The position numbers were made by a program, and so were the translations under genes. Shown here piece after piece: positions 2,812 through 21,519 of a stretch of DNA of 53,864 bases; position 1 is the stretch's first letter; each line of letters begins with the position of its first letter. The stretch is from Schmidtea nova (taxonomy: Eukaryota), in contig CM097882.1 of the NCBI GenBank assembly GCA_044892505.1, positions 133,486,001 to 133,539,864 on the forward strand. The letters are read 5' to 3'. The notes beneath the pieces were generated by a model. The model saw only the letters and a list, made by a program, of their open reading frames with translations. It was not told the DNA's origin and made no database searches.

Positions 2812-4023
2812 ATTGTAAGAAAGTGACAATCCTCCATTAACATGACTCACTGTTGTGTGCTTGTGTGAGTAGTCATATTCTGTGTGTGAGTGTGTGCGTT
2901 TGTACATGTGTGCATGCAGCACTTTGAAAGTGTTGGTGACCTTTGTTCCCATTGCTGTTCATATTTGCACTGCAAACGTTCATTATAAACTGATATATAT
3001 AAATAACTGCCTGACTGGAGATTTTTGGTATGTCGGGGTACAACAATGACAGTTGAGTATTTAATATTAATTTTTGACTTGAGCCATTTATTTGTCGAGG
3101 GAAGTATTTAAGTTAAGGTCTAATATTTGAAAAAATGAACAAATGTTGAAATTTTAATTTTTCACACTTAAATTACCAATCAGAATATTCCATATTTCAG
3201 ACACTTGAAAAAGGCGACACTGAAAATTTGTATTGAATAGAAAATCATAGTTTTTATCTATTGGAAAGTATTTGAAATATCTTACTTCATGTTTCTATAT
3301 AAATTACACTAAAACCACAATAAGCGAAAAATATGAGTAGTAAGTCCATCTAAGACAATTTTAAGCCGGTTTATCCAAGGCCCAACTTGGTCGCTTTAGG
3401 AAACAAACCAGCAATTTATATGTTTTTTGAACTTATTTTGTAGCCAATCTAATTTTCATGCTCGAAAACGCCTAAATTCTGCTTGATCTTTTTACTCTTA
3501 CTCATCATCTGGCTCAAAATTAATTTTTAAGAGAAAAAAAACAAATTTGAATGAAATTAAATATAAATATTTCATTCAGTTTATTTTTTTTATTCGTGAC
3601 TACGTCATGCAGTTCGTCATTCTGATTATGTCAGGGGAAGGTTTTAGGGAAAAGTTTTGGAACCAATATGTCTCCAAAAAGTTTGGTAATGACTCCTCTA
3701 AACTAACAAAAATTAAACATTGATTGTTAAATAAAACAAGTAGTAGGATGTGTCCCCGTCAGATCAGTAACCCCCCCCCCTCAAATTTTTTAAAGTTACA
3801 TAACACCGGACACTTGACCATTACATAACTCGTACGTGACCAGCGTACTCGTGCAAAGACACACTTATGGCACGTGTTTCCAATGGCAACTACTACTTTT
3901 AGAATTTTTTATATCATCCGCACGTGCCCGGCACACTTATTGACTATTACATCATCCGCGCGTGTCCGCCATGCTTATTGACCAGCACACTTAGTGACCA
4001 ACACACCATCAGGTAATCACTAC

Positions 4024-4137
4024 CCGCCAACCGCCAACCGCCAACAACCAACCGCCAACTGCCCACCGCCGACCGCCGACCACCAACCGCCATCCGCCAT
4101 CCGCCATCCGCCATCCGCCATCCGCCAACTGCCCACT
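4024..4137 (+). repeat. GC-rich 7-bp minisatellite (CCGCCAW) in the left TIR; mirrored at ~19072-19203
   Basis: Tandem CCGCCAA/CCGCCAT/CCGCCGA units. Confidence 0.9.
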
Positions 4138-4538
4138 GCGCTCCGCTGCGCTCAACTGCGATCCATTAAATTATCGAAAATCTATATTAGTATTATAATT
4201 ATATAGTTTTCAAGTTATATAAATGCAAGATTTCTCATCAGGATTCAGATTCGTAATGCTTTCATGAAGTCCATAAAAGTTTTAAGATATAACATATATT
4301 TTTATTCTTAATTCATGCCATTATTTAGAAAATATGTAATCAACTATCTTAATGGTAAAAAAATAATCCGGAATGGTCTTTATATAAAAATATACAAGTT
4401 TATACAATCTGTTTACTAACTACTTTATCAGTAGTATTTGATAATTTTATTTAAATTAATCAAATTTATTTTTTAATTACTTTATCTTTATTTCTATATT
4501 AGTCAATTATGGTCCGATTTTTATGAAAACTTGTATAC

Positions 4539-4880
4539 ATATCAAATTCAATATGCTGAATCCGAATTTGTTACAAAAAATAGGGAAAAAAATTAGTCCA
4601 AAGTGAGAGTTGAACCTGGGCCTCTCACATATAAAAAAATTTTAAATGATTTTTCTCGACTAATACTTGTCAGATTTGAACCAAAATTTCTATTTATATC
4701 AAATTCAATATGCTGAATCCGAATTTGTTACAAAAAATAGAAAAAAAAATTAGTCCAAAGTGGGAGTTGAACCTGGGCCTCTCACATATAAAAAAATTTT
4801 AATTGATTTTCTCAACTAATACTTGTGAGATTTTAACCAAAATTTCTATTTATATCAAATTCAATACGCTGAATCCGATT
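4539..4880 (+). repeat. ~156-bp tandem repeat (two full copies plus a partial) in the left TIR; mirrored at ~18325-18665
   Basis: ATATCAAATTCAATAYGCTGAATCCGA starts at 4539, 4696 and 4852. Confidence 0.9.
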
Positions 4881-5197
4881 CCTTAACAAAATTTTCATAA
4901 AAACGGCCAAAGAAAAAATTATTCAACCTTGAGAGTTAAAACTGGGGTCTCACAATTAGAAATCCATAGCCTTTCCAACTAAGCTACATTCCACACTTTT
5001 AATAAACAAAATTTTAACATATATTTGATTTTTCTNNNNNNNNNNNNNNNNNNNNNNNNNNNNNNNNNNNNNNNNNNNNNNNNNNNNNNNNNNNNNNNNN
5101 NNNNNNNNNNNNNNNNNNNNNNNNNNNNNNNNNNNNNNNNNNNNNNNNNNNNNNNNNNNNNNNNNNNNNNNNNNNNNNNNNNNNNNNNNNNNNNNNN

Positions 5198-5298
5198 TTG
5201 AACGCGCGTGAAACGCGCGTTCTTCTTCCTTGTTGTATAAGACAAATCACAGTACGCATTGAACGCGCGTGAAACGCGCGTTCTTCTTCCCTTGTTGT
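5198..5298 (+). repeat. 61-bp-period units each containing a perfect 10-bp-stem hairpin; mirrored at 17912-17998
   Basis: GAACGCGCGT-GAA-ACGCGCGTTC at 5200-5222 and 5261-5283; adjacent to an N gap. Confidence 0.9.
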
Positions 5299-5303
5299 TT
5301 AAG

Positions 5304-5378
<75 letters not shown>
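5304..5378. repeat. (ATA)25 microsatellite inside the left TIR
   Basis: Direct reading; the mirror position in the right TIR is an N gap. Confidence 0.95.
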
Positions 5379-5381
<3 letters not shown>

Positions 5382-5445
5382 CACACAAATAAAACTTGAC
5401 ACAAAATAAAAAAAAGACATTTTCAAATAACAAAATTTATTAAAA

Positions 5446-5895
5446 TCAAAATACGTGAGATATTCTGGCATTGTTGACTCTCCAAATTGGAGTCATAACA
5501 TCATTCAAATCAAGTTTATACCCTTGAATTGTAATGTTAATATACCAGCTTTCATTATCAATTAATTGAATCTCTTCAAATGAATCGAAGAATTTGGTTT
5601 GCCGATTATTAATGACTATGTTTTCATTGCAACATAATTTCTTATTGATCTGATTCAAAACTTTATTGAGAGATAATACATCTTCTTTCGATATAGTTCC
5701 ATAAAGATTCGAATATTGAGTCTTACTCAATTTAACAGGATTTGAAAGACTGAAATCTATTTCACTAACCAAAAAATACATTTTATGGCCATGATATATT
5801 TGAACTGGCTTCAAAATAGCTTTCTTTGATTTAACTGGTTTGTCTGAATCAATTGTATTAGATCCATTATTGCTAAATAATTTAGTTCCTAACAT
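5446..5895 (-). CDS. Polinton orphan protein, 149 aa from ATG 5895; weak resemblance to OB-fold ssDNA-binding proteins
   Basis: Open 450-nt frame in AT-rich DNA, TATAAATA 42 bp upstream, stop inside the TIR followed by AATAAA; SSB idea rests only on the C-terminal pattern YINITIQGY..PIWRVNNARI. Confidence 0.65.
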   Translation of the reverse strand: MLGTKLFSNNGSNTIDSDKPVKSKKAILKPVQIYHGHKMYFLVSEIDFSLSNPVKLSKTQYSNLYGTISKEDVLSLNKVLNQINKKLCCNENIVINNRQTKFFDSFEEIQLIDNESWYINITIQGYKLDLNDVMTPIWRVNNARISHVF

Positions 5896-6136
5896 TTTAA
5901 AATAATAATCTTTAATCACTTAAAGCTTATATTTATACTAAAATAACAATCGTGTATGCAACCAATCAAAATACTATGATTGAAATACATTCAAACTATA
6001 ATTCAATTAAACAAAAAAAAAAAAAAACTTAAATAAAATAACAATAAAAACTAATAACTATTTAAATACTTTAACAATAAAATATAAAAAGAAGATTAAA
6101 TAAAAATAAATACAATTAAAGAATAACAATTTATTA

Positions 6137-6497
6137 TTAAATAACATCTTGGGCTCTATGCCACCTTTCTAACTGATAAAGCAGCTCTTCTTTATCTTTT
6201 AAGAACCTCCAGTTTGGGCAACATTTGCAATGAATGCAGCAAATGGGCTCCAACTTTATCGGAGGCTCTTTCATATTCCTTTTGTGTTCCCCGATCACCT
6301 CTTTCAGGTTCACGCCGGAGAACATCCATACCTTGAAGGAAATGAACTCTGGAGCCCAAAACATCATTTCCTTCATTTCTTCAGGGTATAATCTTGCCAT
6401 TGTTTGCAATGCTATTTGCATTAGTGATTCTAAAATAATTAAATTAAAAATTAATTAAAATAAAACAAATAGGCTTACCGTCCAAGGAGCTAGACAT
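6137..6497 (-). CDS. Spliced Cys-rich orphan, 103 aa; exons 6497-6479 and 6429-6137 (49-bp intron)
   Basis: ATG TCT AGC TCC TTG GAC G|gtaagc...ttttag|AA TCA CTA ATG joins in frame (MSSSLDESLMQIALQ); CCIHCKCCP cluster; TATATATA 40 bp upstream; AATAAA after the stop. Confidence 0.7.
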
Positions 6498-6604
6498 GTT
6501 TTTTCATTTTTAACTGAATAAGTGTTTCGTATATATACAAAATTTTGAAACACACTACACCCAATCAGAAACATACACACTCATTACGTATACATGACAA
6601 ATAC

Positions 6605-7075
6605 TTAGGTAATACTTAGCAAAAAGTTTAGGAAATCTTCCTCCTCATTCATCGATTTTATTTCGTTAATAATTTGTTCAACCAATTCATGATAATCCAA
6701 GGTTTTAATACCAAGTATTACTACTTTGCCACTTGCAAAAACGTTTACACATAATGGATTAAATTTAGAATATCTCAAAGCTGGAAATATTTCTGGTTCA
6801 TAAACACAATTAGTTTTCTTCAATAATAAATTTAAATTAACACGGGATCCTATATCTGCAGTTACTGTAATTGATTGAATTTGAATATCTTCAATTGGAT
6901 ATTGTAAATCTTCAATTTTTAAAGGTTGTTTGCACCCCATTATTCGACATTTACCTGATTTGAAAAATAAAATCGGATACTTTCCACTTCTATCGACAAT
7001 TTGTTGTGGTTTCTCCATTGGAAATTTCATGTGCGAAACTGAGCATTTACCTTTATAATTTATGTTGGTCAGCAT
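6605..7075 (-). CDS. TBP-like: TATA-binding protein (TBP)-like protein, 156 aa
   Basis: Two TBP repeats: LTNIN...ILFFKSGKCRIMGCK and IQIQSIT...VYEPEIFPALRY...VNVFASGKVVILGIK, matching yeast TBP LQNIV...ALIFASGKMVVTGAK and FKIQNIV...SYEPELFPGLIY...LLIFVSGKIVLTGAK. Confidence 0.9.
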   Translation of the reverse strand: MLTNINYKGKCSVSHMKFPMEKPQQIVDRSGKYPILFFKSGKCRIMGCKQPLKIEDLQYPIEDIQIQSITVTADIGSRVNLNLLLKKTNCVYEPEIFPALRYSKFNPLCVNVFASGKVVILGIKTLDYHELVEQIINEIKSMNEEEDFLNFLLSIT

Positions 7076-7166
7076 TTATGATGTAATAAAATTTAAATAT
7101 TTTTTATTCGTGTAAAACAATTAATTAAAACAAATATAAACAATAACAATTTCTTTAATATATTAA

Positions 7167-7790
7167 ATGGAATTGAGAAACGACGCAGTATATCAAATTG
7201 TTGGTCCAAGTGGAAGTGGGAAAACATTGTTTGTTTGTAAATTGTTACAATCAAATATGTTTAAATCAAAATTTAATAAAATATATTGGCACCGGGGAGC
7301 TGATGATGAACATGGTTTGACACAAGACCAATTTTGTAAGATAAAAATGACAACAATTAAAGGATTTGATAAAAACTGGTCATCTAGATTACGACAAGGT
7401 GATGTTATTATTATTGATGATTTGTATCAAGAAGCTAATAAAGAAAAGGACTTTAATAATTTATTCACGAAAATAGCTAGACATAAAGGAGTTACAGTTA
7501 TTTTTATTACTCAAAATTTATTTCATCAAGGTGGAGCTCACCGAACTCGTAATTTAAATGTTCAATATCTAGTTGTTTTTAAAAATCCCAGAGATGCAAC
7601 AGTTATTGATTTTCTTGCAAGACAAGCTTACCCTAATAATCGTAGTTTTTTAATTGATGCATTTCAAGATGCAACTCAAATTCCACATGGGTATATTTTT
7701 CTGGATTTCACACAACAATGTCCTGATGAATTACGAGTTAGTACCGATATTTTCAATAAAGAAGGTGCAATGATTTATAAACAAAGTTGA
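7167..7790 (+). CDS. ATPase: A32/FtsK-HerA family genome-packaging ATPase, 207 aa
   Basis: Walker A GPSGSGKT, Walker B IIIDD, ARH..VIFITQNLF, FKNPRD. Confidence 0.93.
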   Translation: MELRNDAVYQIVGPSGSGKTLFVCKLLQSNMFKSKFNKIYWHRGADDEHGLTQDQFCKIKMTTIKGFDKNWSSRLRQGDVIIIDDLYQEANKEKDFNNLFTKIARHKGVTVIFITQNLFHQGGAHRTRNLNVQYLVVFKNPRDATVIDFLARQAYPNNRSFLIDAFQDATQIPHGYIFLDFTQQCPDELRVSTDIFNKEGAMIYKQS

Positions 7791-7810
7791 AATAATAAAT
7801 TACATCAATA

Positions 7811-8347
7811 ATGTTTTTAAAATCACGCACAAAGATATTAAAGTCGCCTAAAATTAAAAAAGTTTTTAAAAAGAAACGTCAAACTAAAGTACCACCAAAG
7901 ACTAGTTACACGTCACCGAAGAAACTTATTATTGAAAATATTCCTGCAAAGAATCTTATTTCACATAATCTGAAACCAAAAGAATCTTTAGAAAAAATTG
8001 AAAATGAAATAAAAACATCAAATCATCGTAGTTTCCCATTTTTCAATGCATTACTTAAGGCACCTAGTATTAAAAGAATTAGTATTTTACAATCGTTTCC
8101 AAATTATGTTATTGATGATCTACTTGATGTTATAGTTAAAATCGTCAAAGGTAAAATTAATATAAGTAAATCAAATAAAAAAGTTCTAAACAAACACAAG
8201 AAACCATTGTTATCACTTGTAAATACTAAAAGTCGGAAACAAATGCGTAAAATCATATATAAACAACAAGGAGGATTTATTGCTGCATTATTACCATTAG
8301 CATTATCTTTATTAGGAGGAGTTGGTTTATTAGGACAACAAACATAA
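7811..8347 (+). CDS. Basic Lys-rich Polinton protein with QQGGF motif and hydrophobic C-terminus (putative core/membrane-active virion protein), 178 aa
   Basis: Open frame, very high Lys content, C-terminal KQQGGFIAALLPLALSLLGG; function inferred. Confidence 0.7.
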   Translation: MFLKSRTKILKSPKIKKVFKKKRQTKVPPKTSYTSPKKLIIENIPAKNLISHNLKPKESLEKIENEIKTSNHRSFPFFNALLKAPSIKRISILQSFPNYVIDDLLDVIVKIVKGKINISKSNKKVLNKHKKPLLSLVNTKSRKQMRKIIYKQQGGFIAALLPLALSLLGGVGLLGQQT

Positions 8348-8414
8348 ACAATGGGACAAACACCTTTGAGTCATTTAGCTAATCTTACATTGAATTTTAA
8401 ATCTACTTGTTGTA

Positions 8415-9481
8415 ATGGAGAAGATATGGACAAATCCGAAAGATCCAGCAGGCTTCGGTGGGGTAGAAAAGCTAAACAAAAAAGTAATCAAATCGAAAAA
8501 AGAGACGCAAAATTGGTTATCCGGACAACTGGCATACAGTCTAAACAAACCAATGCTGAAACGATTTCCAGTAAGAGCATATAAAACATATGGTATTAAC
8601 GATCTGTGGCAAATGGATTTGATGGAAATGATTCCTTATTCGAAAATCAATAAGGGTTTCAAATATATATTAACTTGTATTGATATTTTTAGTCGATATG
8701 CACGTGCGGTTCCAACCAAAACAAAATCTGCTAATGAAATGGCAGTGGCAATCAAAACATTGTTTGCTGATGGGCAGCCGAAAAACTTACAAACTGATTT
8801 AGGTAAGAAAATTAATTAATTTAATTTAATTTAATTTTTAATTTAGGTAAAGAATTTTACAATAGCAAAGTTAAAGAAATTTTAAAGGGAATAAATCATT
8901 ACTCAGTATTTTCACAATTCAAAGCAGCGCATGTTGAAAGATTTAATCGTACATTAAGAGAAAAATTGAAAAAGTATTTTGTGCATCAAGGGAATAAAAC
9001 ATGGATTAATGTTTTACCAAAGATTATTCATAGTTATAATCATTCACCGCATATAGGATTAAAGGGAATGAGACCAGTTGATGTTTCAATAAAAAATACA
9101 GCAAAGATTTTATTATCTCGCAAAGAAAACGCGAAAATGAAAAAACCTAAATATAAAGTTGGTGATCATGTTAGGATTAGTAAAATATCTGCTTCACCAT
9201 TCATCAAGAATTTTGATAGTAATTGGAGTGATGAGGTATTTCAGATCTCAAAAATTAATACTAGCCAAGATCCTGTCATGTATGTTATTTCTGATTCTGA
9301 AAATAATGTAGTTAGTGGTAAATTTTACGAGCAAGAATTGCAAGTTATTCCCCCACCAACAGTATTTAGAATTGAAAAAATTTTAAAAACTAAAATAGTG
9401 GGTAAAGATAAACAATATTATGTCAAATGGCATGGATATCAAAACCCATCATGGATATCAGCCAAAGATCTAGTAAAATGA
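8415..9481 (+). CDS. INT: Retroviral-like DDE integrase with C-terminal chromodomain, 340 aa; exons 8415-8802 and 8847-9481 (44-bp intron)
   Basis: WQMDL; splicing restores LQTDLG|KEFYN; HVERFNRTL; KYKVGDHVRIS; FRIEKIL..YYVKWHGY chromodomain. Confidence 0.93.
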
Positions 9482-10474
9482 ATTTTTATATGATTTTACC
9501 AAGTAATAGTTGCCCATTAATTCATCTAGATAATCAAGCCAGTAAATTCATGATCAATTTACAAAATCCAATTTATTTACGTGGTAATTGGGAAGTTGCA
9601 TTGCAAGATTTCACATTTGTATATAACAAATTTCCTTATTACAGCCAATGCAAAATTTACTACACGACAGTTACAACTGAAACTGTAAATGACTACTTTA
9701 AAGTTCAAACTAATTATGAAGATACTCAATATTTGAATGATAAAGTTGAATTACATCTAGATAAAATATATTTACATATAAATTGTTATATAACACCATT
9801 TTATTTTAAGTTTGAAAATATAGAAGATGCGAATAAATTATGGGTTTAATGAATTAAAAATCATTAGCAACAATTCAACTTATAAAATGCTTATTCCTTC
9901 TGATTATTCATCAGAGAAAATGCATATATCAATAAGTTATGATTTAGAAACAGATTTACTTTATGAATTCCAAGATGAAATATACATGACAAAAGTTGAA
10001 GATTTATATAATTATTTGACATTTTTCTGTTCTCATATATTTAAAGGTGTTGAAATTATTGACAATGTATTCAAATTTAAACTGAAAGATGAAGTTAAAG
10101 AAGTTATATTTGATCAAAAACTAATCAATACACTTGGATTAAAATATGAAAAATATCAAGATAGAGAAGTTAAAGGAATTCGCAAAGCCAAATTATTTAA
10201 TCATCATCAACAAATGTTCATTTACAGTAACATTATTGAACCAATTATTGTCGGTGATTCTCTAGTTCCTTTACTGAAATCAGTTTGGATTAATAAATAT
10301 GAACAAGATGAAGTAGTACAAATTGTTGTTGATAATCCCATGTATTTATCGCTTTCTACTTCATGTATAAACAACATTGAGATTAATATTCGTGACGATA
10401 GTGGAAAGCTTATCAACTTTTCAAAAGATTCAAAAACACATTTGACATTACATTTTCGTAAATTAGATGATTAA
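9478..10474 (+). CDS. mCP: Minor capsid protein (penton, single jelly-roll), encoded in two frames with the break at ~9824-9849
   Basis: N-terminal MNFYMILPSNS...WEVAL in frame 1 (ATG 9478); C-terminal MFIYSNII..VGDSLVPLL..INNIEINIRD..LTLHFRK in frame 2. Confidence 0.8.
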
Positions 10475-10859
10475 TCCGGACATAATTTCACTGTACAGTA
10501 ACGGACAAACTGGTGGGGAAATACCATATTTTGTTGGGAAACAGTATGGATCTGGTTGGTTAAGGACTATTGGGCGATTTACACTCCCAATTCTCAATCG
10601 TATTGGAAGCTTTGGTTTAAAAACGGCTAAAGATGTTATCATGAATGATCAAAAAATATTACCTTCATTAAAAACAAATGCTTTATCTGAAATTGGAAAA
10701 GCATTACCAAGTGTTGCAAATATGATACCGGGGGTTTCAAAAATGTTTAATAAAAATGAACCAGAACCGGAATCGGAAGCACCAGAAACTAAACGTAAAA
10801 AACATAGAAGGTATATAAACAATCGAATGAAAGGACGTGGAACTATATTTGAAATATGA
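10467..10859 (+). CDS. Small Polinton protein with QxG motifs upstream of MCP (putative core protein), 130 aa
   Basis: GQTGG..YFVGKQYGSG..R..LPIL pattern; start and stop overlap neighbours (ATGA). Confidence 0.75.
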   Translation: MINPDIISLYSNGQTGGEIPYFVGKQYGSGWLRTIGRFTLPILNRIGSFGLKTAKDVIMNDQKILPSLKTNALSEIGKALPSVANMIPGVSKMFNKNEPEPESEAPETKRKKHRRYINNRMKGRGTIFEI

Positions 10860-12076
10860 TTTGTGGTAAATCTGAATTATGTCTTTTTGATCGGCCTTCA
10901 CCTCAAGCGGTTATTGAATATGGGGCCTTTGAAGAAGTATTTCCAATGAATTCAATCACTGATAGTAGGAATGACGTTGAATTTTACATTAATGGTTCAC
11001 AAACTGAATATTTGGATTTGAATGATACTTTATTATCTGTTCAAGTGAAAGTTGTTAGTAGTGACTTTAAAGATTTAACTGTTAATGATGACGTAATACC
11101 TAATAATTTTTTGTTTCACACTCTTTTTAAAGACGCGATTCTTGAATTTAATAATATCAAGATTGAAGGAGGAAATAATACATATGCACACAAGGCAATA
11201 ATTGAAACTATTTTAAATTATAATAGTGATACTAAATTCACATGTCTTACTCCAATGGGATATGGAACTTCTGAAGAGAGAAAATCTTGGATTAAAAGCT
11301 CAAAACCTTTCACAATGTGTTCATCATTACAACTAGATTTTATGGATCAACCGAAATATTTACTCCCTGGTGTCAATGTCCACATTAGATTGAAAAGATC
11401 TGATTCATCATTATCATTATTTTCTAAAATTGGATCACCAAGATGTCAATTAATAGATGCAAAATTAATGATTCGTAGAGTTCGTGTTGAAGCATCGGTA
11501 TTAGCTGGTCATCAAATCGGTCTTAACACGAAACATGCAATTTATCCTATGAAAACTAAAGAAATTGTTCATTTTGCCATTGGTCAAGGAGCATCATCAT
11601 TTTACAAAGAACAAATTTTTGGAGATAGGAGAATGCCAAATTTCATTCTTGTAACTTTTCAAAGTGAAACTCAATACAATGGTTCATATACAGCTTCATG
11701 TTCAAAATTTAAACATTTTAATGTTACTTCATTATCTTTATCGAAAAATACTGATTTTAGAGAAACATATACTCAAGATTTTGAAAATAATAATTTCTGT
11801 ACTACATATATGCAAAGTATAATAAGGAATATGGGATATTTAGACCGAAACTTGAATTGTGGTATATCTCTTGAAGACTTTAAATCAAAATATCCATTCT
11901 TTACATTCGTTTTGGCACCAGATTTCGATTTGAATCAGAGTCAATTACCACAAAACGGTAATTTGCGATTAGATATAAAGTTTTCTAAACCTGTTGAAGA
12001 ACCTGTACATGTAATAATATATGGAGTTTTTGAAAACGAAATACAAATAACTGCTAATCGAACTGTATTAGTTTGA
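10856..12076 (+). CDS. MCP: Major capsid protein (double jelly-roll), 406 aa
   Basis: CGKSELCLF..PQAVIE, VEFYI.G..EYLDLNDTLL, GNLRLDIKFSKP, VIIYGVFEN are Polinton MCP hallmarks. Confidence 0.92.
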   Translation: MICGKSELCLFDRPSPQAVIEYGAFEEVFPMNSITDSRNDVEFYINGSQTEYLDLNDTLLSVQVKVVSSDFKDLTVNDDVIPNNFLFHTLFKDAILEFNNIKIEGGNNTYAHKAIIETILNYNSDTKFTCLTPMGYGTSEERKSWIKSSKPFTMCSSLQLDFMDQPKYLLPGVNVHIRLKRSDSSLSLFSKIGSPRCQLIDAKLMIRRVRVEASVLAGHQIGLNTKHAIYPMKTKEIVHFAIGQGASSFYKEQIFGDRRMPNFILVTFQSETQYNGSYTASCSKFKHFNVTSLSLSKNTDFRETYTQDFENNNFCTTYMQSIIRNMGYLDRNLNCGISLEDFKSKYPFFTFVLAPDFDLNQSQLPQNGNLRLDIKFSKPVEEPVHVIIYGVFENEIQITANRTVLV

Positions 12077-12120
12077 GCAAATATTACTATAAATATAGGG
12101 AATAAGTAAACAAATTTGAT

Positions 12121-12514
12121 ATGAAGTAAGTTTTTATTTACAATTTAATTTAATTTAATTAGTTCTATTCAGGTTAATCGAATTGGAAAACAATTATTAG
12201 GAAATGAGTTTGTTGGTGTATTCCCATTAGACAAAATTCCTTATTTAGATATCAATCAAGCTATAGTTGTCAATACTCAATCATCAACTCTTGGTGGGGA
12301 ACATTGGATTGCTGTCTATGTAAAACCGAACAAGATACACGTTTTTGAACCAATGGGATTTTATTATCCAGCTCTATTAGTTAGTAAACTGCAAACAATA
12401 GGTAAACCAATTGTGTATAATAAACATCGGTATCAAAATCCATTGACATCAACTTGTGGTCAACATTGTCTTGTTTGGTTAAATTATATGTATAAACGAA
12501 TTGATTTTAAATAA
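12121..12514 (+). CDS. PRO: Adenain/Ulp1-like cysteine protease, 118 aa; exons 12121-12125 and 12163-12514 (37-bp intron); absent from the ORF track
   Basis: ATGAA|gtaagt...aattag|TTCTATTCAG gives MNSIQVNRIG..FVGVFPLD; catalytic GEHW, FEPMG, YQN, TCGQHC. Confidence 0.88.
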
Positions 12515-12528
12515 ATGTATTAGTAAAA

Positions 12529-12936
12529 ATGTCTTGTTATTTTATTGATATTAGTATTTTTAAAAATGAATTTGGTGGATTTGTTATTAAGGAATTATGT
12601 ATGATAAATACTAATAATGTTTTAAGACCATTACATTGGGTGTTTTCAGCAAATGAATATCATGATGATCAACTACATAACGGTCAAAATTACTTTTGTC
12701 CAACGTGTATATTAAGTCCTATTGGTTCTGATCGTAAAAATGCAATATTTTATGTCACTGATGACAGAAAGGAAGAGATGTTAAAATTTTATTTTCCTTC
12801 TTTAAGAATTGTAAGATATTCAATGAAAGAACATCAGAAATTTCCAAGCAATATATCGTGTCCATATTATGATCATGATGATGATTGTGCATATAAAAAT
12901 TGTTTACTTGGTGTGTTGGATTATTTGAAATATTAA
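12529..12936 (+). CDS. DEDD-fold/Maelstrom-like protein with putative Zn-binding E..C-H-C motif, 135 aa
   Basis: YFIDIS..FVIKELCMI, IFYVTDDRKEEML, CPYYDHDDDCAYKN; pattern-level recognition only. Confidence 0.55.
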   Translation: MSCYFIDISIFKNEFGGFVIKELCMINTNNVLRPLHWVFSANEYHDDQLHNGQNYFCPTCILSPIGSDRKNAIFYVTDDRKEEMLKFYFPSLRIVRYSMKEHQKFPSNISCPYYDHDDDCAYKNCLLGVLDYLKY

Positions 12937-13088
12937 ATAAATGTATTATCCTACTTGTGTGTATCTTTTTATTCATTTTTGATTGGTTATTTATAGTAAT
13001 TGTGTGTTTTTTTTTTATAAATATATACAGATATACTTTGAATTTTGAAAACACTTTTACAATCACCCAACTTGAAGATATTTTGAAA

Positions 13089-16000
13089 ATGGTAAGATTT
13101 TAATTTTAATTATAATTATTTATCATTATTTATTTAGAATACTAATAACAGTAACAACAAAATGAATATCAATAAAAGAAGCATCAACTCTAACTTTGTA
13201 AGAATTTAAATATTTAATTAATTATTATTATTGGTTTTTTAGAGTATAAAATCAATTTTGAATGAAACAACAGCTTCAACAACTGCTCTGAATAATAACT
13301 TTGTAAGAATTTTAATATTTAATTATTCATTATTTTTGGTTTTTTAGAGTATGAAATCAATTTTGAATGAAACAATTGCTTCAACAACTTCTATGAATAA
13401 TAACTTTGTAAGATTTTAATATTAATTAAATTTTTATTAATTATTTTAATTTAGAATATGCATTCAAAAATACAGAATAATGAAAAAATACCGATGACAA
13501 ATAATTCAATGGATCTTAAAACGATAAAGAAAACTAATGCCAAAATTGTAAATAAAAAAATCAAATGTAAGTATTATTTAGTATTATTATTTTTAAGTAT
13601 TATTTCTTTTTTGAATATTAAGTTATAAACTTAAATTATATTTATTAATAAGATAATAAACATTATGATAATAAATAGTGTATATAATATGTTTTAAAAT
13701 AAATTATATACACACTAATTATTTTCATAATCATTTTATTACAAATTTAGTATTAATAATAACCTTTTTGTTGTGAAAGGTTAAAAAATGTATAATTTAA
13801 GTTATTACCTAATAAATTTATTAACCTTTAACATAAAATCTTAATTATGTAATAAATCAAATTAATGTTAAAATTTTAAATAATATTTTATATTTACATA
13901 GGCCCACTCTATCAGAATTATTGTAATTCGTCATTGAATCACAGTAATGATTGTCATGAACTTATGACGAGATATTATCGTCAAAAGTTCAATGGTTTTG
14001 ACTTTTTTATATGTCCCGTTTGCAAAACGTATACTACCCAAAATTACTCTGTCTTTTATCTTGATCATAAGGATCATCTTACTCAATTTAATTCAAATAA
14101 ATTAGAGTTTCTGAAATCTATTTATAAGAAATCATCTACCTTCTCTATTGTTAATAAAAAACGACCTGCTGATGTTAGGGAAAATATAAATATTTGTAAA
14201 ATTCCTAGGCATGAAATAATAATATTAAGTGACGATGAAGATTATAATAATCAAATAGGAGGATCTATAGATATAAGTAAGGAACCTCTTGTAGAATCAG
14301 ATTTAAAAGGATCTCGTCGAGCATTAAAATTTGATATTAATGAATATAATGTTAACCAAATATTGTTAACTGATAGGATCATCGCAAGACTAAATAATGA
14401 AATTATTAAAATGGGTAGTGTTAAGGTCCAATTTGCTATTAATATTCTTTTTGAAAAGGATGGAGCTTCGAAAGATGAATTTTTATCTAATAACGCTGAA
14501 GTTTTCTCTGAAAATTTTCTAAGTGAGGGGGTTAGAAAATTAAATGAAAAAATTGAAAGATTCTCGCAATTAGGTAGTGGTTGGACAATTAATAGAATTA
14601 GGGAAATTCATTTTATTATTACTAAATTTTCTCTTATAAATAGATTATCTGGACATGGTGATGTTAAAACACCTGTTGCTTTGAAAGGAAAAAGAGCTAT
14701 AATTAATGTAAAAAACACAGATGAATCATGCTTTATATATAGTATTTTAGCATTACAAAAATATGATCAAATAAGTATTAACCGCACAAGATCTCAAAGT
14801 TATAGTAGTTTCTTGAAAGAATTAAATTTTGATAGAATAGTTGATTGTCCCATGAAACTCTGCAATATAACTCGATTTGAGAAAAATAATCCAGGTTTAG
14901 CGATTAATGTCTTATCTTATAACCCTACAGTAATTAATAATGACCTTGACGAAAATGATGACTTTGTTCCTCATCATCCACATTTAGATATTGTTCGTCG
15001 TACTTCAGTAACTGGTGTAACACCTTTATATTTATTATTAATCGAGGATAATGGAAATTATCATTATACCGCTGTAATTAATTTGCAGCATTTAATGAAT
15101 TCTCATAGTAATGACATTGTAAATGTAAGAATTAGGTGTAATTGGTGTCCGATTTGCTTAAATGGTTTCCGTCTTCAAGATGCATTTGACCGACATTATA
15201 GTTTATGCATTAAAAATCAAGTAGGTACCACACTTTATAGTTTACCGACTAACAAGTATTTAGACTTTACTGATTACTCTAAAACTGTAACACCTCCTTT
15301 CGTTATTTACGCAGACTTTGAGTCTATTTTACCTGAGGATATAAGATACCACCAAAAACATTTACCTATATCAGCAGGGTTGTTATTAATTAATAATTTT
15401 ACTAATACTAAATCTTATTATAGTTTTATTGGCTTAAAATGTGTTCGTAAGTTTTTGAAAAAGGTTGACGAAATTGCTAAAACTATAGTACTCCCATATT
15501 ATGATATTTACGGTAATGTTCCAATTAATACTTTATCTTTTACTGAGGAAAGAGATTTTCGGTCTTGTTCACACTGTTATCTTTGTAAAAAACTAATTAG
15601 AAATCGTGTAAGAGATCACGATCACTTCTCTGGTCGATATCTTGGTGCTGCTTGTAGTCTTTGTAATATTGCTAGGAGAAATCGAAAACACTTACCAGTA
15701 GTATTTCATAACTTACGTGGGTATGATATGCATCACATTTTGAAATATGGCCTTAAAAAATTTACTTCTTGGGAGTTGAACATCATTCCAACTACTACAG
15801 AGAAATTTATTTCTTTAATTGCTCATATTGATAAACTGTCTGTTCGTTTTATTGATAGTTATCAGTTCATTAATGCCTCATTAGCAAAAGCGGTTCAAAC
15901 TGTTTCAACTTTTCCATTAACTGCTTCTGAGTTTAATGGAACAATAATGGACTGCAAGGGTATTTTTCCTTTTAACTTTGCGACAAGTTTAGAAATTCTT

Positions 16001-17647
16001 GAAACGACTATGGAATTACCCCCTATCTGGGATAAAGTGTCTGAGACTGAATACTTGAGAGCTCAACAAATTTGGAGTGAAAATAATTGTAACACTTTGT
16101 TAGATTATATGATGGTATACTTGAAATTAGACGTTTTCCTTCTTGCTGATTACTTTCAACAATTTCGCGCGAAGTCTATTGCTCACAATAGATTAGATCC
16201 CTTGAACTTTTATGGAATTCCAGGAATGTCATGGGCTTCAGCATTGATGACATTGAAGGAACCGATTGAACTTCTTCAAGACATGGAAATGTACAATTTC
16301 TATGAAGGAGGAATACGGGGTGGGTTAACTTTTGTTAATAAGCACTATGCTGTTACTGATGAAAATACAGAATTGTTATATATAGATATTAACAATCTGT
16401 ATGGTTGGGCTCTTAGCCAAAGTCTTCCTTTTGGTGATTTTAGTTGGGTTCTTGAAAATCTTGACTCTGTCTTGTTTGAATGTATAAATTCAGATATTGA
16501 AAATCTTCCATATGGTTACACATTGGAAGTTGATATTGATATTCCTGAAAATTTACACGAATTTTTGGATAATTTCCCGGTGGCACCTGAAAAGAAACTC
16601 CCTCCAGGTTCCAAAGTAGAGAAGTTGATGCTTACGCATCATCCCAAGAGGAACTATGTTATTCATTGGAGACTTTTGAAAATGTTTGTTTTGCTTGGTG
16701 TTAAGGTTGTTAAGATTCATAGAGCTATTAGATTCAAACAGTCTGCTATATTTAAAGAATATATAGATATAAATACTTTTTTAAGAGCAAATTCGACTAA
16801 TGAACTGGATAAAAACTACTTTAAGTTACTTAACAATAGCTTATATGGTAAAACTGTAGAGAATCTGAAAAAGCGGATGAATTTGCGATTGTGTAATTCA
16901 TCTGAAAAGATGATTATATATTCTTCTAAACCATCTTTCAAAAAGTCTATAAAAATTGATGATAATTTGATTGCAGCTCATTTGAATAAGGATTTGATAT
17001 GTTTAGATAGACCTAGTTATATCGGTCAAACGGTTCTAGATCTATCTAAATTAAGAATGTATCAACTACAGTATCTTGAATTACAGAAATATAGGGAACT
17101 TTTTAATTGTAAGATTGACATTGTTGCTGGCGACACTGACTCTTTCTTCCTTGAAATTACTAATTGTAAATTAACTAAACTTTTACCTGCGATGATATCG
17201 GATAATCTTTTGGACACATCAAATTACGATCCTAATCATCCTATGTACAGTAGAAATCTTGATTCTGTAATCGGTAAATTTAAAGATGAGAGTAAAGGAC
17301 TTGGATATAAGGAATGGGTTTTCTTACGACCGAAATGCTATAGTCTTTTAGGTGAAGCTGAAACCAATAAAGCGAAGGGAGTTGATTTGGAAGGAACTGA
17401 GATAAAACATCTTTCTTATCTTGAGTGTTATAATAATAATCAAGTCTTTTCTGTTCCTCAAACTCGGATAGGGACGCGAAATCATCAATTGTATACTTTT
17501 AAGAATACTAAAATTGCTTTAAGTAACAACGATGATAAGCGTCAGTGGATGGGGAAAAATACTAGTTTTGCATTCGGGCATTATTTAGGAGTCAATTCAT
17601 TGAACGACGGAGAAGATGAATTCCTGATGTCTATATTTCCAGATTGA
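13089..17647 (+). CDS. pPolB: Protein-primed family B DNA polymerase, predicted 1346 aa from 6 exons: 13089-13091, 13138-13197, 13243-13302, 13348-13407, 13455-13566, 13902-17647
   Basis: ExoI YADFES, ExoII FHNLRGYD, ExoIII YLKLDV, Pol A YIDINNLY, Pol B KLLNNSLYGK, Pol C GDTDS, KCY; all five GT-AG introns join in frame; the track start at 13934 is an internal TTG. Confidence 0.93.
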
Positions 17648-17657
17648 AGAAAGAATA

Positions 17658-19512
17658 ATTTTGATTTTAATAAATTTTGTTATTTGAAAATGTCTTTTTT
17701 TTTTATTTTGTGTCNNNNNNNNNNNNNNNNNNNNNNNNNNNNNNNNNNNNNNNNNNNNNNNNNNNNNNNNNNNNNNNNNNNNNNNNNNNNNNNNNNNNNN
17801 NNNNNNNNNNNNNNNNNNNNNNNNNNNNNNNNNNNNNNNNNNNNNNNNNNNNNNNNNNNNNNNNNNNNNNNNNNNNNNNNNNNNNNNNNNNNNNNNNNNN
17901 NNNNNNNNNNNAGAACGCGCGTTTCACGCGCGTTCAATGCGTACTGTGATTTGTCTTATACAACAAGGAAGAAGAACGCGCGTTTCACGCGCGTTCAANN
18001 NNNNNNNNNNNNNNNNNNNNNNNNNNNNNNNNNNNNNNNNNNNNNNNNNNNNNNNNNNNNNNNNNNNNNNNNNNNNNNNNNNNNNNNNNNNNNNNNNNNN
18101 NNNNNNNNNNNNNNNNNNNNNNNNNNNNNNNNNNNNNNNNNNNNNNNNNNNNNNNNNNNNNNNNNNNNNAGAAAAATCAAATATATGTTAAAATTTTGTT
18201 TATTAAAAGTGTGGAATGTAGCTTAGTTGGAAAGGCTATGGATTTCTAATTGTGAGACCCCAGTTTTAACTCTCAAGGTTGAATAATTTTTTCTTTGGCC
18301 GTTTTTATGAAAATTTTGTTAAGGAATCGGATTCAGCGTATTGAATTTGATATAAATAGAAATTTTGGTTAAAATCTCACAAGTATTAGTTGAGAAAATC
18401 AATTAAAATTTTTTTATATGTGAGAGGCCCAGGTTCAACTCCCACTTTGGACTAATTTTTTTTTCTATTTTTTGTAACAAATTCGGATTCAGCATATTGA
18501 ATTTGATATAAATAGAAATTTTGGTTCAAATCTGACAAGTATTAGTCGAGAAAAATCATTTAAAATTTTTTTATATGTGAGAGGCCCAGGTTCAACTCTC
18601 ACTTTGGACTAATTTTTTTCCCTATTTTTTGTAACAAATTCGGATTCAGCATATTGAATTTGATATGTATACAAGTTTTCATAAAAATCGGACCATAATT
18701 GACTAATATAGAAATAAAGATAAAGTAATTAAAAAATAAATTTGATTAATTTAAATAAAATTATCAAATACTACTGATAAAGTAGTTAGTAAACAGATTG
18801 TATAAATTTGTATATTTTTATATAAAGACCATTCCGGATTATTTTTTTACCATTAAGATAGTTGATTACATATTTTCTAAATAATGGCATGAATTAAGAA
18901 TAAAAATATATGTTATATCTTTAAACTTTTATGGACTTCATGAAAGCATTACGAATCTGAATCCTGATGAGAAATCTTGCATTTATATAACTTGAAAACT
19001 ATATAATTATAATACTAATATAGATTTTCGATAATTTAATGGATCGCAGTTGAGCGCAGCGGAGCGCAGTGGGCGGTTGGCGGTTGGCGGTTGGCGGTTG
19101 GCGGTTGGCGGATGGCGGATGGCGGATGGCGGTTGGTGGTCCGCGGTCGGCGGTGGGCAGTTGGCGGTTGGTTGTTGGTTGTGGGCGGTTGGCGGTTGGC
19201 GGGTAGTGATTACCTGATGGTGTGTTGGTCACTAAGTGTGCCAGTTACTACCCATAAGTGTGCTGGTCAATAAGCATGGCGGGCACACGCGGATGATGCA
19301 ATGGTCAATAAGTGTGCCGGGCACGTGCGGATGATACAAAAAATTCTAAAAGTAGTAGTTGCCATTGGTGTAGTAGTGCCATAAGTGTGTCTTTGCACAA
19401 GTGCGCTGGTCACGTACGAGTTATGTAATGGTCAAGTGTCCGGTGTTATGTAACTTTAAAAAATTTGAGGGGGGGGGGGGTAACTGATCTGACGGGGACA
19501 CATCCTACTACT
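17658..19512 (-). repeat. Right TIR of the Polinton (~1.85 kb, contains two N gaps)
   Basis: Begins ATTTTGATTTTAATAAATTTTG 11 bp after the PolB stop; mirrors 3739-5452. Confidence 0.92.
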
Positions 19513-21272
19513 AAAACACTGATAAAATTTTTTCGAATTTTAAAAAATAATTACAAATCTTTCTTGATACTTACCATGTAATTCGTTCATTAGATATTTA
19601 TATCAATAATTTTCATAATTGTATGTCTAACAATCAAAATTTATTTATTTGGGTTTTATGGTTGTTAAGTACACGATATTTTGGCACTGCATTTATCAAT
19701 TGTGTATTTCCACTTGTGCCGACCAAAAAAACTCCAAAAAAATTTTGATCTATAGTCATACAATTATGAAAATTATTGATATAAATAAAAATAGATCATA
19801 GGTGAAACCAAAAAAAATTATGATATTATAATTAGATCCAAAAAAAATTTATTTATTAATATGCAGAGTATGTTTTATGAAAATTTCTAATCAAGAATCT
19901 CTGCAGTAATTAAAAATCATAATTTTTCAAATTTTCTATCGAAAACTACAAAAGTTTAATAAAACATTCATTTATTTTGAAGTTAAAAAACTTTAATATA
20001 AATTTTTAAGAACAATTATAAATATTTATGAAGATATTTCCGATTTATTGACAATATTAACTATTCTATACAAACCAAGATTATTGGAAAACATTAAAGA
20101 TAATCAATAGGAATTTTGTTAACTTATTCATTACTAAATTTTTTTATATTATTATTTTTTATTATGAAAAAATATTTTATTAGTTTCTGAAAATATTTTT
20201 TAAGAAAAATTGTATTTATTGAATCAAAATCAATTATTAAATTTCAGAAAAATTACCATTAAAAATTACAATTACAAAAGAAAATTACAAAGTCACATTA
20301 GCACATTTGAGAAGATGTGGCTAAATAATGACAAAAAACTCCAATAAATCGCACGTTAGTGTAGCATTGCCTGCAAATTATTAGCGTCAGAGTATAAAAT
20401 TCAATTTTTACAACAAGAAATTAAAACAATTTTTGATACAATTTCTTTTTTACTATGGCAATAAAATAATAGTTTTAAATAATAGATTTAAACTCCCGTA
20501 AAAATGACCAATTTGTTTAATTTAATTATAATGAATTGTTAAATTTAATTTGAAAAAATTATCGACGCAATTTGCAAGGCGATGTCAGCGGTTCATAATA
20601 AATATACAACAAATGACCATTTACTACCAATATCGATCTTTTAATGAGTGATTTTAAAGCAGCAAAGCTTGAAATGAGTTTGGTAGTCAAATTCCATGCA
20701 TGCATGCATGGTATTGCACACCAACAAAACACACCATCAAAGCACACCAAACATATTGCTCACACACCAATACAAGATACAGTTAGAAATTTCTCTCCCA
20801 CGTTAAATAATTGTCTCTTTCTTCTCATTGCGCTTCCGGACTTTTTAAGTTAAAGGTGTGTTAGTTCACAAGGAAGATGAACTACTTACAAGAAAACTAC
20901 TAAAGAAGCCTAAGATGTTTTTAGTAAATTTCAGAACTATTATTGGCTGATTCTCTCAGATGGTGAAAGAAAATTTACAGATCAGTCAATTTTCGTTTTT
21001 GACTACTAACAGCAAGAAATTACGTTCTGATTTCGGTTTCAATTGCTCAGTTGATGGAATATTTAAATATGCTGGAAAATGAGATATAAAATTTAATAAA
21101 CGCAGTTAGCATTCTAGAAATTTTGAAAATTACTCAATTCAACAAAAATAAATGGATCAAATCAATTTTTATCCCTTTTTTTTCTTAATAGTTTTTTCTT
21201 TGAATTTCGTTAAATAATTTCTCAACAACAATAATAACAACAACATCAACAACAAAAATTTAGAAGAAAATT

Positions 21273-21519
21273 ATGAAAAATCATTCAAAATTTGGAAAAA
21301 AAAATTCATTAACAATTTTAACTTGCTTAACTGCCTGTCTTGGTTTTATAATGCTATGCGTTTCTGTGTCAACTGACAACTGGCTGACGACGTTTGAAAG
21401 AGACAGTCAAGACAACGGAACAATTGTCATTGCGATCCATTCTGGTTTGTGGAGAGAGTGCAAACAATTGCAATTTTTCCCGACAGTGTCTAAAAAAACT
21501 TCCTGGAACTCGAAAATGA
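21273..21519 (+). CDS. First coding exon of a host claudin-superfamily tetraspan protein (stargazin/CACNG-like)
   Basis: Hydrophobic TM1, then STDNWL...HSGLWREC signature; ends at a GTAAG donor (phase 1); downstream exons not identified. Confidence 0.65.

Follow-up and report, generated by a model that had tools for sequence, protein, structure and literature searches.

A Polinton in the Schmidtea nova genome encodes a conserved, minimised TATA-binding protein homologue and shares with its relatives a TATA-like word upstream of capsid-module genes

A Polinton in an animal genome carries an intact, shrunken homologue of the TATA-binding protein (TBP) that is found in every near-complete relative, and the elements of this clade also share a TATA-like word, TATAAACA, placed just upstream of the capsid-module genes. 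It is inferred from these two features, although not demonstrated, that the element steers transcription of its own late genes. The window analysed is a 53,864-nt stretch of Schmidtea nova contig CM097882.1 (assembly GCA_044892505.1, positions 133,486,001 to 133,539,864), and the element occupies 15.8 kb of it (3739-19512). The initial annotation, which described an intact and minimised TBP gene inside the element, was correct in that observation, whereas its interpretation is only partly supported.

The open reading frame runs from ATG to stop on the minus strand, and a Pfam search matches its product to TBP (PF00352) with E=1.9e-18 and 66.5 bits against a cut-off of 22.9, residues 63-140 covering profile positions 1-83 of 85. 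The first 62 aa alone score only 15 bits (E=0.022, residues 32-55 on profile positions 49-72), so that by sequence the N-terminal repeat is below threshold, but it is supported by two other results. First, the family profile aligns from the N-lobe S4-S5 strands of M. jannaschii TBP, across an 11-residue gap in its H2 region, into the C lobe; the hits in sequence searches of the PDB are all TBPs. Second, the AlphaFold2 model (pLDDT 95, pTM 0.83) is a two-lobed TBP saddle that matches whole TBP cores over 164-177 alignment columns with TM 0.58-0.71, and the top 44 Foldseek hits in the PDB are all TBPs. In the model the C lobe has the full S1-H1-S2-S3-S4-S5-H2 order, whereas the N lobe has strands at residues 2-10, 25-28, 35-38 and 42-48 and no helix of four or more residues, and thus departs from the canonical topology of the repeat. 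This agrees with the shorter N repeat and short H2 linker of the initial annotation, and the shortening is family-wide.

Among 42 family members, the residues singled out in the initial annotation are well kept: E95, F97, F113 and F38 are invariant, and N4, S68, E93 and P94 occur in at least 90%. Invariant residues lie in both lobes (N6, F38, R44, M46 and G47; E95, F97, R101, P107, C109-N111, F113 and G122). The C-lobe Glu-Pro-Glu-x-Phe motif of the acidic stirrup aligns column for column with archaeal and microsporidian TBPs, and the Phe-x-Ser-Gly-Lys strand motif is also present. Of the minor-groove Asn residues on strand S1 of each repeat, the N lobe keeps N4 and N6, but the C-lobe position, aligned with the strand-S1 Asn of archaeal TBP repeat 2, is Ser68. 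A point missed by the initial annotation is that the N-lobe partner of F97 is not conserved; by our own repeat-to-repeat reading it is I26 in the window protein, and the position varies among I, F, Y, C and others. The protein keeps three of the four intercalating-Phe positions, the concave sheet that by homology binds DNA and the acidic C-terminal stirrup, but lacks the N-lobe helices, which form part of the convex surface that regulators of cellular TBP use.

The gene is a fixed component of one clade of capsid-encoding Polinton/adintovirus-like elements. At least 108 proteins of 99-213 aa share the architecture, and in a library clustered at 50% identity there are 62 clusters at E<=1e-30 and 682 at E<=1e-10. 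The gene is syntenic with ATPase, integrase, capsid protein and PolB in relatives on 16-22-kb contigs (labelled L below), and is present in three of three elements chosen only by their capsid protein, one of them as a 56-aa fragment. pN is 0.28-0.46 against pS of 0.63-0.91; dS is saturated, such that dN/dS of 0.15-0.39 comes only from the pairs in which dS could be computed, with no close sister copy by which to judge selection on this particular insertion. The condition that the initial annotation had set for its own rejection, a neutrally evolving host fragment absent from sister elements, is thereby excluded.

The element has the hallmarks of a Polinton (Table 1): long inverted ends of about 1.7 kb, 98% identical over 1171 nt, a 6-bp target-site duplication, protein-primed PolB, an rve-type integrase, which in this copy is frameshifted once, a packaging ATPase and a predicted double-jelly-roll capsid protein, while the protease rests only on faint hits in orthologues. 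Searches of Pfam and the PDB with the neighbouring 149-, 94-, 178- and 130-aa ORFs gave no match, and Rfam found nothing in the window. An animal host is suggested by a claudin-family exon 1.8 kb from the element and by a Bcl-2 gene in relatives L005-L008. Scans of IMG/VR with the capsid family returned nothing, and scans with the TBP family returned only an unrelated mirusvirus- or giant-virus-like contig, considered below.

Table 1. Features of the element, in positions of the 53,864-nt window
Position	Strand	Feature	Evidence
3733..3738		Left copy of the 6-bp target-site duplication (AAAACA)	Read directly; identical hexamer at 19513-19518
3739..5452		Left terminal inverted repeat; starts AG..., then a C-run, and holds internal tandem repeats	Arms 4027-5197/18008-19178 at 98%; outer arms 3771-3873 and 3880-3993; inner arm 5399-5452 at 94%
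5446..5919	-	Accessory ORF (149-157 aa); upstream region has a CCAAT-type box and TATAAATA, not TATAAACA	Homologues next to the TBP gene in L001, L002, L015 and L024; no Pfam or PDB match
6137..6421	-	Cys-rich 94-aa ORF; a CCAAT-type box and TATATATA lie upstream	Read from the sequence; no Pfam or PDB match
6605..7075	-	Viral TBP gene (156 aa): predicted helix-less N lobe (aa 1-50), short linker, complete C-terminal TBP repeat (aa 62-155)	Pfam, PDB and family alignments, AlphaFold2, Foldseek
7135..7142	+	TATAAACA word in the non-coding spacer between the divergent TBP and ATPase genes, 32 nt from its first T to the ATPase ATG	Word search and reading of the sequence
7167..7790	+	A32/FtsK-type genome-packaging ATPase, intact	Pox_A32, E=1.3e-6; 70-73% identical to relatives
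7776..7783	+	TATAAACA word inside the last codons of the ATPase gene (read as Tyr-Lys-Gln), 35 nt upstream of the next ATG	Word search and reading of upstream stretches
7811..8347	+	Conserved small virion-module ORF (178 aa here, 104-119 aa in relatives)	Comparison with relatives
8415..9481	+	rve-type integrase with a chromodomain; broken (one frameshift-type break; no stops inside the aligned pieces)	Pfam; comparison with relatives
9427..10474	+	Orthologue of a 345-365-aa conserved virion-module protein; broken (one frameshift-type break)	Comparison with relatives
10467..10859	+	Conserved 130-aa ORF; the tail of its coding region holds the capsid gene's TATAAACA word	Comparison with relatives
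10814..10821	+	TATAAACA word 42 nt upstream of the capsid-gene ATG, read as Ile-Asn, a different frame from the copy at 7776	Word search and reading of upstream stretches
10856..12076	+	Predicted double-jelly-roll major capsid protein (406 aa), intact	AlphaFold2 pLDDT 90; Foldseek matches to the major capsid proteins of the iridovirus SGIV, PBCV-1, Sputnik and mavirus at E=1e-17 to 1e-12
12529..12936	+	Probable adenain-like maturation protease (135 aa)	Faint Peptidase_C5 hits in orthologues of L011 and L068; aligns in a single frame without stops over 154 of the 159 residues of the L005 orthologue; no Pfam hit of its own
13934..17647	+	Protein-primed family-B DNA polymerase (1237 aa), intact, with a weak Endonuclease_7-like stretch	45-63% identical to orthologues, which carry PF03175
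17658..19512		Right terminal inverted repeat	Inverted-repeat alignment
19513..19518		Right copy of the 6-bp target-site duplication (AAAACA)	Read directly

Across the clade, the exact word TATAAACA sits 33-38 nt upstream of the start codons of the capsid, ATPase and neighbouring genes. The 9-mer TATAAACAA is the commonest upstream of genes, preceding 17 of 58 genes against at most 6 for unrelated words, and it or an overlapping word is the top upstream 7- or 8-mer in 12 of 15 elements tested. Of 85 copies of the word in ten elements, 48 lie 20-45 nt upstream of an ORF start against 2.4 expected, and 76 of the 85 are on the coding strand of the module; since the elements compared are related, the associated p-value overstates their independence. 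The distance from the first T to the ATG peaks at 33-38 nt. The word occurs in two different reading frames of upstream genes as well as in a non-coding spacer, and is kept upstream of the capsid gene in 34 of 43 metagenomic loci, down to 38% protein identity. By gene class it precedes the capsid gene in 16 of 20 cases, p178 in 12 of 15, the ATPase gene in 11 of 18 and the TBP gene in 0 of 14, while the integrase and two other module genes mostly lack it at the close spacing.

In light of these observations, the open reading frame is best regarded as encoding a lineage-specific viral TBP (vTBP). The analysis itself establishes the TBP homology, a modelled saddle with a complete C-terminal repeat and an N lobe reduced to its strands, conservation under constraint, and the spacing of the word ahead of virion-module genes but not ahead of the vTBP gene; what follows is inference from sequence and prediction alone, DNA binding, TFIIB recruitment, expression and resistance to regulators included. 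In this view, vTBP is made from a different, host-type promoter and binds the TATAAACA elements through its concave sheet, with the complete C lobe on the TATA half and the reduced N lobe on the AACA half, and recruits host TFIIB and RNA polymerase II through the conserved acidic C-terminal stirrup. Because it lacks the N-lobe helices, it would escape factors that handle cellular TBP through that surface, giving the element a private switch for its late genes. This explanation is about as likely as not. TATAAACA contains a perfect TATAAA core, such that host TBP could serve these promoters without help, and the implied 5' leaders would be only a few nucleotides long if the usual TATA-to-start distance applies. 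A search for a sister element without a TBP gene, in which co-occurrence of gene and word might be judged, found only two candidates, L019 and L020, both too short to exclude a TBP at the alternative position. Furthermore, as two other genes of this copy are broken, the vTBP gene may no longer act here. Of the two functions proposed in the initial annotation, a regulation-resistant late transcription activator or a dominant-negative decoy, the former gains circumstantial support from the promoter-like word and the latter gains none.

Alternative explanations, each less likely, can be considered. It is possible, though doubtful, that the word is real but unrelated to vTBP, being read by a host forkhead factor or by host TBP, or acting as a polyadenylation signal for the upstream gene, with vTBP having some other target. 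ATAAACA fits the forkhead core (RYAAAYA), TATAAA is a minor, weak polyadenylation hexamer, and many copies lie within the last codons of the upstream gene. However, strict orientation and a 33-38-nt spacing to the downstream ATG fit a core-promoter element better than an enhancer site, and the copy at 7135 lies between divergent genes with no upstream co-directional gene to terminate. In the upstream stretches examined, moreover, the distance to the next ATG was read as steadier (27-29 nt) than that to the upstream stop (about 1-6 nt).

Less likely is a decoy or host shut-off role, wherein vTBP occupies host TATA boxes or sequesters TFIIB but cannot complete a productive pre-initiation complex, because its N lobe lacks the surfaces for TFIIA and other partners; host transcription would be dampened in the element's favour and the TATAAACA promoters would be served by host TBP. 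The absence of the N-lobe helices, a remodelled N-lobe stirrup region, the retained C-lobe stirrup and the canonical TATAAA core are compatible with this reading. It does not explain, however, why the C at position 7 of the word is kept across the clade in different reading frames, or why the vTBP gene is itself in a separate promoter class. In addition, both lobes keep invariant residues on the strands that by homology form the DNA-binding sheet, so DNA binding rather than TFIIB capture alone appears to be selected.

An architectural role outside transcription, in which the saddle bends AT-rich DNA at the element's ends or origin to assist protein-primed replication, packaging or integration, is unlikely. 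TBP-fold proteins bend DNA sharply, and the gene often lies next to the packaging ATPase, but its position moves within the clade between two sites, upstream of the ATPase or downstream of the protease; the acidic stirrup, which in cellular TBP contacts TFIIB, is conserved; and the repeated word with fixed spacing lies at gene starts and not in the inverted ends, which were checked for TATA-like sites in this window only. Finally, a recently captured and neutrally decaying fragment of the host's own TBP, for which nothing speaks beyond the shortened N repeat, is refuted by an identity of only 22-28% to solved TBPs from animals, yeast, plants and archaea, together with the shared architecture, synteny and mostly synonymous substitutions described above.

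Cellular TBPs, archaeal and eukaryotic, share the fold and clear sequence homology with vTBP, which at 156 aa is smaller than a core TBP of about 180 aa; scores give no clear affinity to either archaeal (56-74 bits) or eukaryotic TBPs (47-68 bits). The novelty claimed in the initial annotation was overstated, in that a "TBP" gene is already labelled in midsize linear dsDNA (MELD) viruses with adintovirus-like PolB (Starrett et al. 2021, PMC8502044, Fig. 5 legend, and its bioRxiv version). The gene is labelled there, in datasets of non-animal eukaryotes, as a homologue of a host protein, without structural, family or promoter analysis; the setting is likewise a midsize linear dsDNA virus or Polinton-type genome with PolB and integrase. 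The helix-less lobe and the promoter word are undescribed in the literature that could be searched. The late-gene vTBP of beta- and gammaherpesviruses (BcRF1/ORF24/UL87) is a TBP mimic that reads a non-canonical TATA-like late promoter and brings in host RNA polymerase II, and by inference may work alike. It is not a family member, however, being a large protein with only a remote TBP-like domain (Foldseek E=6e-3 and TM 0.37 for BcRF1; E=0.05 for a UL87-domain protein) that binds polymerase directly rather than through TFIIB. The TBP homologues of Nucleocytoviricota and mirusviruses are the best viral structural matches (E=3e-7 to 1e-3), but identity is 8-19%, the targets are 186-842 aa, and they serve viruses that mostly bring their own polymerase. 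The IMG/VR contig L009 carries such a canonical two-repeat TBP, which is not of this family, beside ribonucleotide reductase, PolB and heliorhodopsin genes.

Polintons are generally assumed to depend wholly on host transcription, and how their genes are switched on is an open question. A conserved element-encoded TBP and a fixed-position promoter word give that question a concrete and testable form: which promoters are involved, which factor reads them, and in what order. Tentatively, vTBP and TATAAACA may form a self-contained cis/trans late-transcription switch, in which a helix-less half-saddle TBP would read a C-containing TATA variant and by-pass the TFIID-level control of the host; this would be the first transcription system assigned to Polintons. 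The word at 33-38 nt from start codons could also serve as an annotation aid for the clade. The protein is, to our knowledge, the smallest natural two-lobed TBP and, with one lobe stripped of its helices, is a natural experiment on which TBP surfaces are needed for DNA binding and polymerase recruitment.

A single ATG-to-stop ORF of 156 aa occupies 6605-7075 on the minus strand. In a Pfam search it scores as TBP (PF00352) with E=1.9e-18 and 66.5 bits against a curated cut-off of 22.9, residues 63-140 covering profile positions 1-83 of 85. All 35 sequence matches in the PDB are TATA-binding proteins, the best of them archaeal (2z8u at 9.4e-18, 1pcz, 1ais and 1mp9), with eukaryotic cores following at about 1e-12. 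The TBP-encoding ORF recognized in the initial annotation is therefore real, and its match to the family is far above chance.

The presence of two repeats required further evidence. In the alignments to the three archaeal TBPs, both matched stretches reuse the same query segment, residues 63-144, and these alignments therefore do not show an N-terminal repeat. Tested alone, the first 62 residues reach only 15 bits (E=0.022), with residues 32-55 falling on profile positions 49-72, the S4-S5 strands. Two further results nevertheless show that the N-terminal part is a homologous, reduced repeat. First, a profile of 42 family members aligns in one stretch from the S4-S5 strands of the first repeat of M. 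jannaschii TBP, across an 11-residue gap in its H2 region, into the second repeat. Second, an AlphaFold2 model built on that 42-member alignment is very confident (mean pLDDT 95, pTM 0.83), and its top 44 Foldseek matches in the PDB are all TBPs, aligned over 164-177 columns with TM 0.58-0.71 normalised to the query and 22-28% identity. In the model the C lobe has the canonical order of strand 62-74, helix 81-87, strands 90-92, 99-102, 109-113 and 117-123, and helix 129-155, whereas the N lobe has strands 2-10, 25-28, 35-38 and 42-48 and no helix of four or more residues. The initial annotation was thus right in describing a shorter N repeat with a short linker in place of H2, to which it can be added that H1 is missing as well. 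This copy also has an acidic-hydrophobic C-terminal tail of about 12-15 aa that most of the relatives shown lack, and through which AlphaFold2 extends helix H2'.

Conservation was read from the 42-sequence alignment. N6, F38, R44, M46, G47, E95, F97, R101, P107, C109, V110, N111, F113 and G122 are invariant, and N4, I5, Y7, P23, G41, C43, S68, T70, L81, E93, P94, A99, L100, G116 and K117 are present in at least 90% of sequences; the window protein carries the common residue at every one of these positions. Residues for which the initial annotation quoted yeast TBP numbers were placed here on archaeal and microsporidian TBPs, where E93-P94-E95-x-F97 falls on the Glu-Pro-Glu-x-Phe stirrup motif, F113 on the Phe of the Phe-x-Ser-Gly-Lys strand, and S68 on the Asn of strand S1. 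F38 holds the F113-equivalent place in the N lobe. By a manual repeat-to-repeat reading, the N-lobe equivalent of F97 is I26 in this protein, in a column that varies within the family, so that three of the four classical Phe positions are fixed.

The ORF lies within an element bounded by inverted repeats that are 98% identical over 1171 nt and flanked on both sides by AAAACA, the 6-bp duplication typical of Polintons. The features of the element, of its surroundings and of related contigs are collected below. The 406-aa protein was modelled (pLDDT 90) and matches the double-jelly-roll major capsid proteins of the iridovirus SGIV, PBCV-1, Sputnik and mavirus at E=1e-17 to 1e-12. Two genes are broken, the integrase and the orthologue of a 345-365-aa module protein, each with one frameshift-type break and no stops inside the aligned pieces, whereas PolB, ATPase, capsid protein, protease and TBP each align in a single frame without stops. 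The weak Endonuclease_7-like stretch of the polymerase, also weak in the polymerase genes of two relatives (L010 and L011), suggests a small nuclease or zinc module inserted in the N-terminal half. Beyond the element the region is rich in transposons and contains several N-runs, and the claudin/PMP22-family exon marks the host as an animal.

Coordinates of features in the window and in related contigs
Feature	Coordinates	Strand	Remarks
Viral TBP gene	6605-7075	-	156 aa
C-terminal tail of the TBP	7033-7075 (aa 141-156)		acidic-hydrophobic
Element, ends of the inverted repeats	3739 and 19512		start and end as read directly
Paired inverted repeats	3771-5452 with 17658-19478
C-run and internal repeats of the terminal repeats	3771-3780 / 19470-19481 and 4000-4150 / 19060-19210		C-run on the left (G-run on the right) about 30 nt from each tip; short CCAACCG-like tandem repeats and longer internal repeats offset by about 157 nt
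ORF whose orthologues lie next to the TBP gene	5446-5919	-	149-157 aa with its orthologues
A32-type ATPase	7167-7790
rve integrase with a chromodomain	8415-9481		broken
Major capsid protein (predicted double jelly roll)			406 aa
Probable adenain-like protease	12529-12936		faint Peptidase_C5 hits in orthologues
Polymerase	13934-17647		1237 aa; orthologues carry PF03175
Endonuclease_7-like stretch of the polymerase	about aa 546-580		PF02945, E=0.007
Word copy in the TBP/ATPase spacer	7135	+
More distant word copies	8258-8265, 10366-10373	+
Claudin/PMP22-family exon	21273-21569	+	PF00822, 27.2 bits against 26.7; 1.8 kb from the right end
Fragments of Tc1, pogo (DDE_1), hAT-like and mariner transposases	2389-2952, 28907-29632, 39999-41429, 47566-48013
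Bcl-2-family gene, contigs L005-L008	9398-9775		PF00452, E=5e-10
MATH/TRAF-domain gene, contig L069	3952-4941		just upstream of a TBP fragment

The gene is not a host fragment. A word-index protein search found 108 proteins, mostly of 144-165 aa and all with PF00352, at 39-72% identity over about 90% of the query, and an exhaustive profile search of the 50%-identity library found 62 clusters at E<=1e-30, 682 at E<=1e-10 and 3293 at E<=1e-3. Contigs of 13-22 kb that carry these proteins are collinear with the window element, with TBP, ATPase, integrase, capsid protein and PolB at 55-73% protein identity. Among 55 metagenomic loci fetched with the capsid protein, six hold a TBP of this family; L020, the one further locus with a long flank on one side, has none there. 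Three more elements were chosen only through their capsid protein, and all three carry the gene, one of them as a 56-aa fragment. The gene sits in one of two places, upstream of the ATPase or downstream of the protease. In L005-L008, which are virome-type contigs of 13-16 kb, the Bcl-2-family gene lies between the TBP and ATPase genes, and the window element has no counterpart. In the relatives that have it (L001, L002, L015 and L024), the orthologue of the window ORF at 5446-5919, an ORF of 149-157 aa with no detectable homologues, lies next to the TBP gene and could be a partner that covers the helix-less face of the N lobe. Against relatives, pN is 0.28-0.46 and pS is 0.63-0.91; dS is saturated, and dN/dS of 0.15-0.39 comes only from the pairs where it could be computed. 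In light of the 22-28% identity to every solved TBP, including animal ones, a recent capture from the host is excluded.

Inspection of the stretches upstream of genes in four elements revealed a recurring, promoter-like word, and the counts bear it out. TATAAACAA is the commonest 9-mer in the 70 nt upstream of 58 genes, occurring at 17 genes and in all four elements, where unrelated words reach 6 at most. With automatic ORF calling, TATAAACA or an overlapping word is the top 7- or 8-mer upstream of ORFs in 12 of 15 elements tested; elements L012 and L019 are the exceptions, and in the window it ties. In ten elements, 48 of 85 copies lie 20-45 nt upstream of the ATG of an ORF of at least 50 aa, where 2.4 are expected (binomial p about 4e-51, a value that overstates independence because the elements are related), and 76 of the 85 copies are on the coding strand of the module. 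When copies are anchored on TAAAC, the two preceding columns are T (87/118) and A (85/118), the following columns are A (85/118) and A or T (102/118), and the distance from the first T to the ATG peaks at 33-38 nt. Upstream of the capsid gene, TATAAAC is kept in 34 of 43 metagenomic loci, down to 38% capsid identity.

The signal is in the DNA, not in a protein. At the end of the ATPase gene the word is read Tyr-Lys-Gln, ahead of the capsid gene it is read Ile-Asn in another frame, and one copy lies in the non-coding spacer between the divergent TBP and ATPase genes, where there is no upstream co-directional gene to terminate. In the window the word occurs five times inside the element, all on the plus strand: three copies lie 32-42 nt upstream of the ATPase, 178-aa and capsid ATGs, and two lie about 93-101 nt upstream of other ORF starts. 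With similar copies in relatives, a second set of TATAAACA copies lies 85-107 nt upstream of ORF starts (integrase region, 130-aa ORF, protease), and these may serve longer leaders or small uncalled ORFs. The word is unevenly distributed among gene classes, and the gene for the viral TBP (vTBP) and its left-arm neighbours instead show assorted canonical TATA boxes, several with CCAAT-type boxes.

Presence of the word at 15-65 nt, by gene class
Gene class	Loci with the word
Capsid	16/20
178-aa ORF	12/15
ATPase	11/18
PolB	2/8
Integrase	0/19
vTBP	0/14

Virus-encoded TBP homologues are familiar from giant viruses and mirusviruses. The matches in BFVD are of that kind, at 8-19% identity, and the one IMG/VR hit (L009, IMGVR_UViG_3300020438_000074) is a 45-kb viral contig of mirusvirus or giant-virus type, with ribonucleotide reductase, a split family-B polymerase, heliorhodopsin and a canonical two-repeat TBP (123 bits), unrelated to the Polinton family. 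Beta- and gamma-herpesviruses have a remote TBP mimic for late promoters, which is the closest known analogue of the function inferred for vTBP but not a relative. For Polinton-type genomes the only mention found is a gene label in the legend of Fig. 5 of Starrett et al. 2021 (PMC8502044), given under "homologs of host proteins" in the preprint, which refers to viruses from non-animal datasets and carries no analysis. "TRAF" and "TBP" labels are listed in the same figure legend, and because in L069, a 28-kb contig, a MATH/TRAF-domain gene adjoins a TBP fragment, those genomes may belong to this clade. No paper was found that combines TATAAACA with Polintons, Mavericks or adintoviruses. Thus, the presence of the gene is not entirely new, whereas the family-wide helix-less lobe, the status of the gene as a fixed gene of a clade, and the promoter word appear to be new within the literature that could be searched.

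The interpretation offered in the initial annotation is borne out only in part. Nothing yet ties the word to vTBP except that the two travel together, and no TBP-less sister clade was found against which to test that link. Among the alternatives, each of which is unlikely, the word may be read by host TBP, by a forkhead factor (ATAAACA is its core), or as a poly(A) signal. Orientation, spacing to the downstream ATG and the copy in the spacer argue for a core-promoter role. A decoy role is a further alternative, and a role in DNA bending for replication or packaging is the weakest of the three.

What the analysis itself establishes is a conserved, constrained TBP-fold protein with an intact C lobe and stirrup and a strand-only N lobe, a fixed-position, oriented TATA-like word at the virion-module genes, and the placement of the vTBP gene outside that promoter class. 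That vTBP binds these elements, recruits TFIIB and Pol II through its stirrup, and escapes factors that need the N-lobe helices is inferred, and is judged about as likely as not. In TBP-DNA complexes the C-terminal repeat lies on the 5' half of the box and the N-terminal repeat on the 3' half, and the altered lobe would therefore face the half that carries the unusual, conserved C.
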